Position numbers and translations under genes: made by a program
Notes under the pieces: model-generated
The model's database searches: none
What the model was told of the DNA's origin: nothing
The model's input: only the letters and a program-made list of their open reading frames with translations
NCBI GenBank assembly: GCA_054661495.1
Contig: BAAFSQ010000047.1
Location: forward strand, 1 to 32,000
DNA length: 32,000 bases
Reading direction: 5' to 3'
From: Zygophlyctis sp. KS116
Taxonomy: Eukaryota > Fungi > Chytridiomycota
In this document: one piece after another, positions 18,551 through 22,902 of the stretch
How positions within the stretch are numbered: the first letter of the stretch is position 1
How the letters are laid out: each line of letters starts with the position of its first letter

Positions 18551-20017
18551 ATGAATATCAAAGATATCTTTCTGTTTTCAACGGTTTTAACTCTTCTTTT
18601 GATCACCAGAAAGTCATGGTTACCATCTACTCCCTTGGAAGATGTACCATTGTACTTAAATGATATTGATTATTGGTTGTTGAATATCACAATTTTGCCT
18701 AAATTGTTGTCCAATATTTCTCCACCTGATGCTCTAAAAGGAACAGTTATTGCAAGTCCTTCTAGAGAATCTCCAAATTATTATTATCATTGGATCAGGG
18801 AGTAAGATCGGTAGAAAATGACATATAGCGCTGGCGTGGTTCTTGGTGAGATCAATCATCTGTTCAAAATTCAAAATAACTCAAAGTTTGAAGATATTTT
18901 ATGGAATTATGCTGCTTTATCGAGAAAGCTTCAAATGCTACCTTCCATTGGTGGGATCGGCGAACCAAAGTTCAATGTTGATGGTTCTCTTTTTAATGGT
19001 CCATGGTGTAGACCTCAATCAGATGGACCTGCACTGGAAGCCTCTTTACTGATTGAATTTGCATTCAATTATTTGAAATTGGGAGGGTCTATTGAAGAAG
19101 TCTCGAAGTTGTATGATTCCAAACTCCCTACTGATTCAGTTGTCAAAATATGTCTTGAATACGTCTCCCATAATTGGTCCGAAAATACCTGTGATTTGTG
19201 GGAAGAAGTTATTGGTGATTTTTTCTATACTAGAATGGTTCAAAGATCTGCTTTAATTAGAGGGCAAGCTATTGCAAGAAAAATGAAGGATCCTTTAGCA
19301 GCAGACTGGTACACTCTGCAAGCTTCACAAATATCTCTTGCTTTAGAACATCATTGGTCAGAAGCAAAAGGATACATTGTATCTGGCTTAAAGAATTCAC
19401 AGGATATTAGATCTGGATTGGACATTTCTATTATTTTGGGAGTGCTTCATAGTCCAGAAACGCCTTCATTTTCTCCAACGGATGACCGTATTCTTTCCAC
19501 TTTTGTTCAATTGGTGAATAGCTTTTCCAAATCTTACGATATAAATAAGATAACTCATGATCAGTACAATCAAAGATTGGGAATAGCAATAGGTCGTTAT
19601 CCAGAAGACTTGTATAATGGTGCAGGAAAATCAATTGGAAATCCATGGTATCTTGCAACTTCTTCTTTGGCTGAATTCTTGTATAAATTAGCATTTTTAT
19701 ACACCAAACAAGGAATAATTACTGTAACCTACAGATCTCTACCATTCTTTCGTGATTTTCTTCAACTGAAATCTATAGCTTTGGGAGATATTAAATCTGA
19801 CTCTAAAATCTTTTCTCAAATCATTTTAAATTGCTTTATTCGTGGTGATGAATTTCTACGCCGGATAAAGTATTATTCTCCTACAGCAAATCTATCTGAA
19901 CAATTTGATGGCAAATCAGGAATAAATAAAGGCGCTCATGATTTATCTTGGAGCTATGCATCTTTATTATCTGCTATTCGGTCTAGAAATGATTTAAGAA
20001 TGATCACAAAGAAATGA
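18551..20017 (+). CDS. Glucoamylase, glycoside hydrolase family 15, with N-terminal hydrophobic segment and no obvious starch-binding domain; intron 18802-18828
   Basis: ASPSRESPNYYYHWIR|DAG, GEPKFNVDG, WCRPQSDGPA, DLWEEV (catalytic acid), GRYPEDLY, LSEQFD, DLSWSYA. Confidence 0.96.
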
Positions 20018-20047: not shown

Positions 20048-20581
20048 ATGCCAATTCTCTTTTTACTATTCTCTTGTTTGATCTTGACTATACAGTCCAC
20101 TCCAGAATTAAAAAAAGAATTATCCAATCTTTCTTTCAAGGATGCTGTCAAGACTGCCTGGAATCATCAAGGTCTTCAATCTATTGTAGATACACTTGAG
20201 AAGAATGAAATGGCGATTGCATATGCTCTAAAACATCATGATTCTAACAGTAATGGAAAAGGATTTGACATCATTAGCGATGCATTTTATTCCCCTCACA
20301 AGAATAGACTTTATAGATTGGAAAAACTGTTGGAGAATCCTACATTATCTTTTCTCGACTTTAAAAATCTTGCACAACTAATGGTCAATGAAGGAGATGT
20401 ATGGGCAATAGATCTACTATTGAATAATCCAAAAATTGATCTCAGCTTTGATGACAATCATTTATTAAAGACTGCAAGATATAATAATGATTCTTTAATG
20501 GTGGAAAAATTAAAAAGTGATCAGGCTGTCAGGAACAAGGATTTATTATTACAGACTGGGGTAGAACCAACAATTTTCTAG
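20048..20581 (+). CDS. Orphan secreted protein A (177 aa) with degenerate ankyrin-like C-terminal repeats
   Basis: Intronless ORF; signal-peptide-like MPILFLLFSCLILTIQS; LLLNNPKIDLSFDDNHLLKTA...MVEKL; aligns by eye with the 21437-22321 product. Confidence 0.8.
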   Translation: MPILFLLFSCLILTIQSTPELKKELSNLSFKDAVKTAWNHQGLQSIVDTLEKNEMAIAYALKHHDSNSNGKGFDIISDAFYSPHKNRLYRLEKLLENPTLSFLDFKNLAQLMVNEGDVWAIDLLLNNPKIDLSFDDNHLLKTARYNNDSLMVEKLKSDQAVRNKDLLLQTGVEPTIF

Positions 20582-20746
20582 ATAGTGTTTACGTTATGAA
20601 TAGTCATTAATATTGTCAATCTATAAATTGAGTTTATCAGTTGATCGGCAGGGTTGAATGGCTTGCGTTGCTTTTTGCGCAGAGATTCCCAGCAAATATT
20701 CCTTATCAAATTCCAAATGTTTATCTTTTACTATTCTCAATCTTTA

Positions 20747-21298
20747 ATGGATCTTTATAAGATCGCTTGTCTAATCCTTTACTTTCAAACTCTTTCAGCA
20801 ATGCCCATCAGTGTCAATACTGGTTCTGGGGTTTCTGGCACTGGTTCATTAAGAGGTGGAAATCTAGTTGGATCAATCAATTCCAAACCTATTATTAATG
20901 CAATCGCTATACAAAATTCTAGAAAGGGTCAAAAGGCTGTAAAGCCAAAAACAAACAAGAAGATTAAAGGGAAAAAGAAGGCTGCTAAACTGATGGCTGA
21001 GCAGAATAAATTAACTAGAACAGACTCAAAGTCAACTTTATCAAGTAAAGTCATTAATGATGCTAATAATGGTCAAAATGGTATTTCCCATTTAAAACAG
21101 CAATCGGGTCTAAGTTTTGATCTTCAGGATTTGAATATTGATGGTTCAGTATCATTAACAGATGGTTTTGAAAATATAAACCACCCCTTGGATCAAAATC
21201 AGATTTCCAAGATGAAGAAGACTCCAAATTGGGTAATCATTGATGAAGATCAAGTTGATGATTGGAGTTTGATTGATGGAGAGGGATCAGTTTTCTGA
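20747..21298 (+). CDS. Orphan secreted, probably disordered protein B (183 aa) with a Lys-rich patch and C-terminal AIM/LIR-like motifs
   Basis: Intronless ORF; MDLYKIACLILYFQTLSA-MP signal-like start (alternative ATG 20717); KPKTNKKIKGKKKAAK; ends NWVIIDEDQVDDWSLIDGEGSVF. Confidence 0.75.
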   Translation: MDLYKIACLILYFQTLSAMPISVNTGSGVSGTGSLRGGNLVGSINSKPIINAIAIQNSRKGQKAVKPKTNKKIKGKKKAAKLMAEQNKLTRTDSKSTLSSKVINDANNGQNGISHLKQQSGLSFDLQDLNIDGSVSLTDGFENINHPLDQNQISKMKKTPNWVIIDEDQVDDWSLIDGEGSVF

Positions 21299-21436
21299 TT
21301 AATTTAATAAATCAGTAAAATTACATTGATGACACTGAACATGATTAGTCCTTGATGAGCTTGACAGCTTTGGTCCAAGGAGTAAAAAACGTGACTAGAT
21401 TTGAGGCTTATCAGCGATCAATTAATTCCCAATTGT

Positions 21437-22321
21437 ATGTTGCCCTGCATTATTGTTTTCTTGTTATTAAATCTAGTCGCTATATTTGCAGCACCGCTGC
21501 CTTATCATATTAATCAAATGCATACTTTGCCCTTTCATGGGACGCTGGGGACTGGAATATATTTCAGGACTCCTCGTCAGTTAATCTCTGAAAAGCTGCA
21601 AAGGGAATCATGGCATCATGATGCAAAGGGAAATGGATTTCAAGCAATTAAAAACGTTCTCGATATTCCCAAGAAAGATCGATACAAGTACATGTCACAT
21701 TTGTTAAATAATCCAACTGTAGATTTATCGGCTAATGATCATCAGTTTGCAAAGACATTGGTTCAAGATGGGGATGTTCATAGTCTAAGTATAATCGCCG
21801 CAAATAATCCAAAATATGATTTGAGCTTTAATGATAATCAATTATTGAAACTTGCATCTTCTAGTCAAAAATCTGATATCGTTCAGTTATTGTTGCATGA
21901 TCAAATGGTTACAAAATTATTAAATCCGGATATCACTTCCGAAATAGATGATGAATTAGAAAGTCTTGGGTTTTCTAAAACTCTTAAATCAGACTCTGAA
22001 ATTACAGCACTCACTCAAACCACGGATAATAGTTCACTTCAGTCGGAAGTTCAAACAATAGAAGAAAATAATGACGAAAATTTAATAGATATATTATCAA
22101 GTCATGATGGTGAAACTTTAGAGGATGTCGATGATATATCAGATATTGGATCTATAAAAATATCTCTTGGTCTCTCTGAAAATGAAATCAAATCTGATCA
22201 AGATGAATATCATTTAGTCGATCATGATGAGGATTGGGAGTATCTTGGTTCAGATGATGATGATGATCAGAGTATTGGAACTAAAGAGCTCATTAGTTTA
22301 CTATCATTGATGAAGGGATAA
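21437..22321 (+). CDS. Orphan secreted protein C (294 aa): ankyrin-like domain paralogous to A plus an acidic tail with AIM/LIR-like motifs
   Basis: Intronless ORF; MLPCIIVFLLLNLVAIFA-AP signal; NPTVDLSANDHQFAK and NPKYDLSFNDNQLLKLASSSQKSDIVQLLLHD; tail DEYHLVDHDEDWEYLGSDDDD. Confidence 0.82.
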   Translation: MLPCIIVFLLLNLVAIFAAPLPYHINQMHTLPFHGTLGTGIYFRTPRQLISEKLQRESWHHDAKGNGFQAIKNVLDIPKKDRYKYMSHLLNNPTVDLSANDHQFAKTLVQDGDVHSLSIIAANNPKYDLSFNDNQLLKLASSSQKSDIVQLLLHDQMVTKLLNPDITSEIDDELESLGFSKTLKSDSEITALTQTTDNSSLQSEVQTIEENNDENLIDILSSHDGETLEDVDDISDIGSIKISLGLSENEIKSDQDEYHLVDHDEDWEYLGSDDDDDQSIGTKELISLLSLMKG

Positions 22322-22350: not shown

Positions 22351-22902
22351 TCAAGATTTTATAAAGTTAGATCTTCGATTGTTTAGTCTTTTTAGAAGGA
22401 TTCTGATTGAGATTTTATCCTGTTTTGTGATTGCTGAAAAATCCAAATGTTTCAATTTTGGTAAACGAGACAGGATATAAAATCTATAATTTGGTTCCTC
22501 AACTACAGGATTTCCATGAAGAGTCAGGTTCCTTAATTCCTTCAGGTTTGATAATTTGTCTAATTCGGACAAATTATCGATCTTGTTACCATGAAGATAT
22601 AAGACTCTTAGATTTGGATAAGATTGGATTATTTCATCTAGAGATTTCAACTTATTGAAACTTAGATCAATCCAAAGTACTTGATCTGAAGGGACAAGTA
22701 TCCTGCTAAACGTATCTGTTAGTCCTTTTAGATTTGTTAAATGATTGTTTGATAATCGGACGGATGAAGCTGGTAAAGAATCTTTAATGTGAAAGTTTAG
22801 TAGATCTGGGATTGTTGTAATCTCATGGAAGCTGAAATCTAATGTCGCAGATGATGCTCCTTTTGTCTGGACGCATTCATCAATCTTTGGACTATTTATC
22901 AT
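22351..22902 (-). CDS. LRRC51: Leucine-rich repeat protein, LRRC51-like
   Basis: LDFSF, VRLSNNHL, WIDLSFNKL, LRVLYLHGNKI, LRNLTLHGNPV..NYRFYIL..LPKLKHLDFSAITKQD (SDS22-like LRRs with LRR cap). Confidence 0.8.
   Translation of the reverse strand: MINSPKIDECVQTKGASSATLDFSFHEITTIPDLLNFHIKDSLPASSVRLSNNHLTNLKGLTDTFSRILVPSDQVLWIDLSFNKLKSLDEIIQSYPNLRVLYLHGNKIDNLSELDKLSNLKELRNLTLHGNPVVEEPNYRFYILSRLPKLKHLDFSAITKQDKISIRILLKRLNNRRSNFIKS

Follow-up and report, generated by a model that had tools for sequence, protein, structure and literature searches.

The window analysed here, a 32,000-nucleotide stretch of the genome assembly of the chytrid Zygophlyctis sp. KS116 (GCA_054661495.1, contig BAAFSQ010000047.1, positions 1 to 32,000), contains three same-direction open reading frames, A, B and C, all without introns and flanked by a GH15 glucoamylase gene and a small leucine-rich repeat (LRR) gene on the opposite strand (Table 1). 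The subject of this study is a pair of short aromatic-x-x-aliphatic cores near the end of the acidic tails of B and C, which we call the tandem module and which resembles the LC3-interacting region (LIR), also known as the Atg8-interacting motif (AIM). The core pair and its spacing recur in the tails of relatives of B and C, and we consider below what the module may bind and in which cell the proteins may act. Gene A has neither an acidic tail nor an LIR-like module.

Table 1. Genes A, B and C of the window and the elements recognised in B and C (positions in the window; aa, amino acids; AF2, AlphaFold2; pLDDT, predicted local distance difference test)
Feature	Position	Strand	Description
Gene A	20048..20581	+	177 aa; signal-peptide-like leader (20048-20098), then degenerate ankyrin-like repeats
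Gene B ("B-short" type)	20747..21298	+	183 aa; weak signal-peptide-like leader, basic stretch, acidic disordered tail with three aromatic-x-x-aliphatic cores
B leader, MDLYKIACLILYFQTLSA	20747..20800	+	hydrophobic core of 8 residues
B lysine-rich basic region	20921..20989	+	resembles a nuclear localisation signal; KKIKGK also in the L047 homologue
B motif 0, DGFENI	21161..21178	+	acidic F-x-x-I core
B tandem module	21224..21274	+	PNWVII (21224-21241), linker DEDQV, DDWSLI (21257-21274)
Gene C	21437..22321	+	294 aa; hydrophobic leader, ankyrin-repeat domain, acidic disordered tail of ~130 residues with the tandem module at its end
C leader	21437..21493	+	18-21 hydrophobic residues, then PLP
C ankyrin-like repeat domain	21614..21916	+	~residues 60-160; AF2 pLDDT 75-86, helical repeats
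C mid-tail motif, SEIDDELESLGFSK	21938..21979	+	kept in C-type proteins
C tandem module	22202..22246	+	DEYHLV (22202-22219), linker DHD, EDWEYL (22229-22246)
C C-terminal ELISLL	22286..22303	+	fits the acidic dileucine pattern [DE]xxxL[LI]; weak helix in AF2

The tandem module and its conservation

The initial annotation had placed five motifs in B and C, and all five are present where it put them. Its statement that both Trp residues of B lie in these motifs is exact, as B has two Trp in total, both inside the PNWVII and DDWSLI cores and 11 residues apart. In the acidic tail of C the distance from Tyr to Trp is 9 residues, which agrees with the separation of about ten residues near the C-terminus that had been described for both proteins.

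Nine tails from four syntenic lineages and two short contigs were compared, those of window B and C included, the relatives being given here by our own labels. Two [W/Y]-x-x-[I/L/V] cores are kept in all nine at a spacing of 9, 11 or 12 residues, and the remaining tail is unalignable. B-type cores with a Trp-Trp spacing of 11 read PNWVII...DDWSLI in the window and LDWVDL...DEWVDI, LGWIEI...DDWITV, LGWVDI...DDWINL and SEWIEI...DDWIAV in the relatives (L041-B, P0005, P0007/P0273 and P0008). The L047 B-short homologue carries PDWVKI...DEWSIV at a Trp-Trp spacing of 12. C-type cores, with a Tyr-Trp spacing of 9, read DEYHLV...EDWEYL in the window and EDYDWI...PDWETL and EDYDWI...VDWEYL in the relatives (L041-C and P0014).

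An aromatic residue at position 0 and L, I or V at position +3 are found in 18/18 module cores of the nine tails and in all five cores of B and C; across the family position 0 alternates between W and Y and position +3 among I, L and V. In every tail (9/9) the second aromatic follows directly on a D or E, and the first core is preceded by D or E in most, by N in B and by G in two relatives. After the second core stands G, N or D in eight of the nine tails and V-D-E in the L047 homologue. Strain variants within the modules hit x positions alone (in B, VII becomes VMI; in C, YHLV becomes YQLV), and one Asp has been gained or lost among strains in the Asp run that follows the second core of C. 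Because the core pair and its spacing are conserved while the tails are otherwise unalignable, the module is a real, selected short linear motif of the LIR type. Conservation is the decisive evidence that the motifs are real. The conservation in homologues on which the initial annotation had made its proposal depend was thus found in nine tails, for the core pair as for its spacing; one C-type homologue, P0003, is without the module.

Short motifs of this kind could also be chance matches in acidic low-complexity tails. The core pattern is frequent, at 19 per 1000 aa in background open reading frames, and the excess in single tails reaches p 0.02-0.08 only. In shuffled tails at least two acidic cores arise with p 0.03-0.08, a modest within-sequence excess, and a core pair at 9-12 spacing turns up in 2-7% of them; with whole-protein shuffles the corresponding p for at least two acidic cores is 0.0007 for B and 0.01 for C. 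However, cores and spacing are kept in nine tails although the folded domains are just 37-43% identical and the tails otherwise unalignable, and strain polymorphisms avoid the core positions. We regard an origin by chance as extremely improbable, and the conservation among the compared tails has effectively refuted it.

Further elements of these proteins recur among relatives. Equivalents of DGFENI occur in four of the five B-type relatives (EEYRSI in L041-B, DDYTSI in P0005, NDYPSI in P0007 and DDYTSV in P0008); the L047 B-short homologue, which is the nearest B-short relative, has none. The C mid-tail stretch SEIDDELESLGFSK...SDSEIT is unchanged between C and the 42%-identical P0003, although P0003 lacks the LIR-like module. 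P0003 keeps the mid-tail motif as SE[IL]DDELESLGFSK, while L041-C and P0014 carry the variants DDDDLESLN and DADLESLNF; it is a second conserved linear motif. Equivalents of the terminal ELISLL are DNVSLL (P0005), EDVSLL (P0007), EIKNLL (L041-C) and EMKKLI (P0014), a terminal [DE]xxxL[LI] being present in six of the nine tails and lacking in B. Between its leader and its acidic tail the L047 B-short homologue has a basic stretch with K-K-R-R-R-K-R, and this stretch, like that of B, resembles either a signal for nuclear localisation or several dibasic processing sites.

Fit to the LIR/AIM class and candidate partners

According to the Noda and Alemu definitions (PMC5119064), the LIR class has acidic or phosphorylatable residues directly upstream of the core. 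With the cLIR and xLIR definitions of the iLIR paper (PMC5119064) we scanned eight of the nine tail-bearing members, the L047 B-short homologue being left out. Of the eight members, seven had exactly one strict cLIR match, which always fell within the module; the background rate, taken from 68 other open reading frames of the genome, is 0.26 per 1000 aa. C matches through EDWEYL. Several family cores are close to verified LIRs of the same source (PMC5119064), e.g. DGWLII and DEWILV. Compared with the LIRs of TP53INP1/TP53INP2 (DEWILV, DGWLII; Table 1 of PMC5119064), the first cores of the B type (G-W-I-E-I-D, N-W-V-I-I-D) are nearly the same hexapeptide type with an acidic residue next, a resemblance of short motifs only between unrelated proteins.

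The interpretation of the initial annotation is supported in part: the cores, the acidic context, the disorder, the conservation and the cLIR match of C fit the LIR/AIM class, and B matches neither pattern. The class is the best fit to the substitution pattern of the module, and our confidence in it is evenly balanced, covering together the readings in which the module would meet Atg8 in another cell and in the chytrid itself. Other motif classes were weighed and rejected. A tyrosine-based sorting signal does not fit the W/Y interchange and the strict I/L/V at +3; the kinesin W-acidic motif was set aside as the B types have no acidic residue after Trp; and for the SUMO-interaction motif and the delta-COP W-W motif the W/Y interchange, the +3 aliphatic residue, the spacing or the neighbouring residues mismatch across the family.

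Directly adjacent tandem LIRs have been described only in Legionella RavZ and in metazoan EPG5 (PMC12087653). RavZ, which is a secreted anti-autophagy effector, and EPG5 share with the present module two acidic W/F-x-x-[ILV] cores on a short linker in a flexible region. The EPG5 tandem peptide (W-x-L-V, acidic linker, W-I-L-L; PMC12087653) is of the same style as the module of B and C, with a spacing of 17 residues in EPG5 versus 9-12 here. The present proteins differ in having neither an Atg4-like protease domain, as RavZ has, nor a tethering scaffold, as EPG5 has, and they share no sequence homology with either.

A conserved short linear motif may nevertheless have a partner other than Atg8, since conservation proves function and says nothing on the partner. 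The module might be an acidic surface for transcription activation, in which case the basic stretch of B would direct the protein to the nucleus; it might, jointly with the terminal [DE]xxxL[LI], be recognised by a trafficking adaptor; or its partner might be a luminal or extracellular receptor. The basic stretch ahead of an acidic, Trp-rich tail in B and in the L047 homologue is consistent with the first of these and the acidic dileucine-like ending of six tails with the second; B fits neither LIR pattern, and a secreted protein normally would not encounter cytosolic Atg8. On the other hand, W/Y interchange, strict I/L/V at +3, an acidic residue at -1 and fixed spacing together form the LIR signature, and strict cLIR is matched in seven of the eight scanned members and in the module only. 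Tyrosine-based adaptor signals are not known to take Trp, and activation domains seldom keep an exact spacing. On balance a partner other than Atg8 is rather unlikely in our view, though one to be taken seriously.

The nearest matches of the genome's own ATG8 are chytrid ATG8s of Terramyces, Entophlyctis and Obelidium. The canonical gene (G000 C24:63621-63952, L002) is split by a 23-nt GT...AG intron, and the last strand of a second, divergent ATG8 paralogue (G000 C6:69298-69591, L001) is encoded in another exon. For complex prediction we used Obelidium ATG8 (P0161), whose C-terminal half is near-identical to the second exon of the genome's ATG8. With C residues 235-294 the score was 0.06, which is no evidence for or against binding because peptides and disordered chains lie outside the range on which the tool has been tested.

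Leaders, ankyrin domain and proposed site of action

Secretion was judged by heuristics of hydropathy, length and charge. Leaders of the family have 10-15 hydrophobic residues with polar interruptions, followed by small residues and Pro (A-A-P-L-P, G-A-P-L-P), and their C-terminal flanks are mainly acidic or neutral, as in signal peptides. By these measures the leaders of A and of most relatives look like signal peptides. The leader of B aligns with a clear hydrophobic leader of 14 residues in the L047 homologue. That of C has a mean Kyte-Doolittle hydropathy of 2.69 (19 residues) versus 1.4-2.1 in orthologues with cores of 10-15 residues. Taken together these features suggest that B and C are probably secreted.

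Several direct comparisons gave no significant match: at E<=1 Pfam recognised an ankyrin repeat in neither A nor C (L041-C reached E 0.055, under the threshold), Foldseek returned nothing significant for either AF2 model (C and the B-full protein P0005), and a profile of the tail had no match among PDB sequences. The family profile, however, matches hundreds of repeat proteins, among them P0054, P0072 and P0092, which are Pfam-verified ankyrin proteins at 1e-17 to 1e-23. VIA-align of the P0005 model gave top matches that are nearly all ankyrin domains (Z 6.4-8.3, root-mean-square deviation (rmsd) 2.2-2.9), with Z values middling for helical repeats; one of these matches, at rmsd 2.7 across 83 residues, is a designed protein of three ankyrin repeats, and Legionella ankyrin effectors are also among them. 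On the profile links and the comparison of predicted models, A and C are divergent ankyrin-repeat proteins. Because of this, and because A, B and C all have metagenomic homologues, the label of orphan proteins in the initial annotation was wrong.

In the AF2 models the P0005 domain has pLDDT 93-98 and its tail ~45-53, and the tail of C falls below 50 for residues 165-285, so that the modelled tails support the earlier placement of the motifs in disordered regions near the C-terminus (pLDDT below ~55 in C and P0005). These models also bear on the possibility that the module binds within the family, either to the groove of its own ankyrin domain as an autoinhibitory contact or, from the tail of B, to tail-less A in trans. 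Ankyrin grooves take extended acidic-hydrophobic peptides, and A, which has the domain only, adjoins B, which has the tail only, a pairing kept in three lineages. Against this, the single-chain models of C and P0005 show a low-confidence tail that makes no contact with the folded domain, even where the P0005 domain is modelled at pLDDT 93-98, and A-type, B-full and C-type domains form separate clades in the ankyrin-domain tree, A and B not being simply a split gene. Binding within the family thus strikes us as quite improbable.

Ankyrin-repeat genes have expanded greatly in the genome, with the unit D-P-R-V-D-P-S...A-I...G...I-V-x-L-L, and the A/C domain forms a divergent branch of this expansion. 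Loci of this expansion lie on C497 (L008, L012, L022, L023), C617, C459 and other contigs and include an open frame of 989 aa. Many of its members have F-box-like N-termini, and leader-like N-termini occur in several paralogues (C11:82427, C21:72833). Pfam found no F-box in A, B or C, the sole trace being a sub-threshold E 0.11 in the relative P0054, and an N-terminal L-S-F-K-D...W stretch is a mere resemblance to the F-box-like start of the cytosolic paralogues.

Rates of change differ among the genes of the region. When the window is compared with L040, which is another strain of its species, the ratios of nonsynonymous to synonymous substitution (dN/dS) are 0.94 for A, 0.62 for C, 0.36 for B, 0.10 for GH15 and 0.17 for ODC, all resting on few substitutions. 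Identity between the window and L041 is 66-73% for GH15, 37% for A and 43% for the N-terminal 180 residues of C, and the C tail is alignable over its last 41 residues alone. A and C evolve fast, like many effectors.

If the N-terminal segment were instead an uncleaved anchor, the ankyrin domain and tail would lie in the chytrid's own cytosol, and the proteins would be endogenous, membrane-tethered Atg8 adaptors or selective-autophagy receptors. Their architecture would then resemble that of the ER-phagy receptor TEX264, in which a hydrophobic segment at the N-terminus is followed by a small folded domain and a long disordered region, with an LIR near the C-terminus. Ankyrin repeats and motifs of the LIR and dileucine types are normally cytosolic, the wider family in the genome looks cytosolic (F-box-like plus ankyrin), the segment of C is 18-21 residues long with the high hydropathy given above, and besides a canonical ATG8 the genome encodes a paralogue of it. 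In contrast, most leaders are 10-15 residues long, polar-interrupted and followed by an acidic or neutral flank, which favours an orientation with the N-terminus in and the C-terminus out, and high dN/dS and lineage restriction would be odd for housekeeping receptors. Unlike the TEX264 type, most leaders here look cleavable, there is no relation in sequence or fold, and the family is limited to one lineage. An endogenous receptor therefore seems distinctly unlikely.

The explanation we prefer, while holding it only tentatively, is that B and C are secreted effectors that would enter a host cell and dock on Atg8. B and C belong to a small, fast-evolving, tandem-clustered family of putative signal-peptide proteins in a freshwater clade of chytrid-like fungi, in which the end of a disordered tail carries a module of ~16 residues with two [W/Y]-x-x-[I/L/V] cores, nearly always acidic before and with aromatics 9-12 apart. 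An Atg8-family protein would take up one or both cores, in beta-strand form, in its two hydrophobic pockets. Docking of this kind would either hold the ankyrin domain of C or the basic region of B at membranes coated with Atg8 or make the docking site unavailable. The site of action would be the cytosol of another cell, host or prey, reached after delivery, because the proteins bear leaders of the secretion type. For the full chain from secretion through host entry to the hijacking of Atg8, our estimate lies between unlikely and tentative. More specific and rather more doubtful is a version in which the freshwater clade secretes clustered effectors, the ankyrin-bearing C and B-full and the tail-only B, whose tandem LIR module engages the Atg8 of an algal host; host autophagy would then be blocked or redirected at the site of infection.

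Several points weigh against secreted Atg8-docking effectors. The C-type homologue P0003 lacks the tandem module, and window B fits neither the cLIR nor the xLIR pattern. When the proteins of the genome were searched with B and with the P0008 tail, no further tails turned up. The genome-wide enrichment of acidic W-x-x-L/I tails raised in the initial annotation was therefore not borne out, because the module tails are confined to this gene cluster. The hydrophobic core of the B leader is just 8 residues long, and the C leader, judged by its hydropathy, may act either as signal peptide or as signal anchor. No RxLR was found on reading the sequences of A, B and C, and no translocation motif was recognised in them. 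Delivery into a host and a parasitic lifestyle are both steps that we infer, and acidic aromatic motifs in disordered tails serve other partners too.

Secreted effectors with AIMs are on record in oomycetes (PexRD54, AVH195) and in bacteria (RavZ, Lem26). Phytophthora infestans PexRD54 and P. parasitica AVH195 are RxLR effectors that bind host ATG8 through AIMs, and the likeness to the present proteins lies in the combination of a signal peptide, putative in the present proteins, a folded helical-repeat domain and AIM/LIR cores. PexRD54 has its core at the C-terminus, and its C-terminal AIM peptide by itself affects autophagy; AVH195 has several AIMs. In contrast to both, B and C, on reading of their sequences, are without RxLR-EER and have no Pfam match to WY or PF16810, the folded part is ankyrin-like (and missing in B), the organism is a fungus and not an oomycete, the two cores stand at a fixed short spacing, and the function here is predicted from sequence. 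The plasmodiophorid PbANK1 family and Legionella AnkB/AnkH combine a secretion signal with a few ankyrin repeats in an intracellular or attached parasite, as the present family probably does, and the secreted ankyrin effectors of plasmodiophorids are likewise an expanded, fast-evolving family. A signal peptide with ankyrin repeats has precedent as a secreted effector design. No account of those secreted ankyrin effector families known to us mentions a tandem LIR-type module conserved at the C-terminus.

In a literature search that was not exhaustive, we came across no report of effectors that target Atg8 in chytrids or in any other fungus. If the module does engage algal Atg8, these proteins would be the first such effectors described from fungi, and likewise from an aquatic parasite. 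They would also add to RavZ and EPG5 a third tandem-LIR design of independent origin; Atg8 targeting by secreted effectors would then widen from oomycetes and bacteria to early-diverging fungi. Chytrid parasites help to check phytoplankton blooms, and their effectors are scarcely known. Should the partner be a protein other than Atg8, the module would still count as a new linear motif, conserved and of defined consensus. Since gene B consists of the tail only, the module evidently can persist without a folded domain. As the module is short, conserved and easily mutated, the hypothesis is directly testable.

Gene cluster, transcripts and flanking genes

The assembly comprises 12.7 Mb in 1175 contigs and is AT-rich (GC ~34%); the window is its contig C47. 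Freshwater and lake metagenomes hold DNA near-identical to the window. The order (cwf18)-thiolase-GH15 followed by a cluster of A-, B- and C-type genes is found on four contigs, the window, L040, L041 and L047. A, B and C are all intact in L040. The L041 cluster runs from an A-type gene through a 59-codon open frame with a B tail to a C-type gene, and that of L047 consists of an A-type gene, a B-full gene, a B-short gene and the beginning of a C-type gene. L039, a short contig with no flanking genes, has a C-type gene followed by a B-full gene. From the gene content of these syntenic relatives and of L039 we derive an ancestral cluster with four gene types (A, B-full, B-short and C). B of the window is collinear with the 175-aa L047 homologue (L047:6821-7348) in leader, basic stretch and acidic tail.

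A and C have a domain of ~100 residues in common (40% identity), and an alignment of B with the C tail spans 103 residues at 28% identity (E 2e-5). Homologues of C in the databases are 97% and 94% identical (other samples), besides P0003 at 42%. Further family members, all metagenome-derived, came from a family profile search of 1.84 billion representative proteins. Tail-less A-type homologues (P0010, P0057/P0274) exist as well. A scan of metagenome contigs with the family alignment gave 169 pattern matches, of which 0 were confirmed.

That A and B are the two parts of one split gene was considered and ruled out. A-type, B-full and C-type are distinct clades in the ankyrin-domain tree, L047 has a complete B-short homologue with its own leader beside an intact B-full gene, and an RNA-library contig continues unspliced over the stop codon of A.

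Contigs of three metatranscriptome studies cover A, B and C with no splice joints seen; because these data are contigs, they indicate presence in RNA libraries only and not the level of expression. The open frame of B has a second possible ATG upstream, at 20717. Contigs of two independent metatranscriptome studies begin at 20691/20692, 26 nt 5' of the first ATG of the frame of B (20691-20842). This position may be the 5' end of B's own transcript, in which case the start would be the ATG at 20717.

The L041 equivalent of B (L041:3560-3930) has just the 59-codon open frame with all three cores, and slightly upstream, in a different frame, lies a short leader-like ATG start; gene decay, an error of assembly or an unusual gene model may account for this arrangement. 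In the GH15 glucoamylase gene (18551-20017) the first ~85 residues form a separate exon (18551-18805) with a hydrophobic leader at its start. The small LRR protein (LRR_9/LRR_4, 183 aa; 22351-22902, minus strand) is encoded convergently with C and ends 30 nt from the C stop codon, and its gene has a dN/dS of 0.35 among strains.

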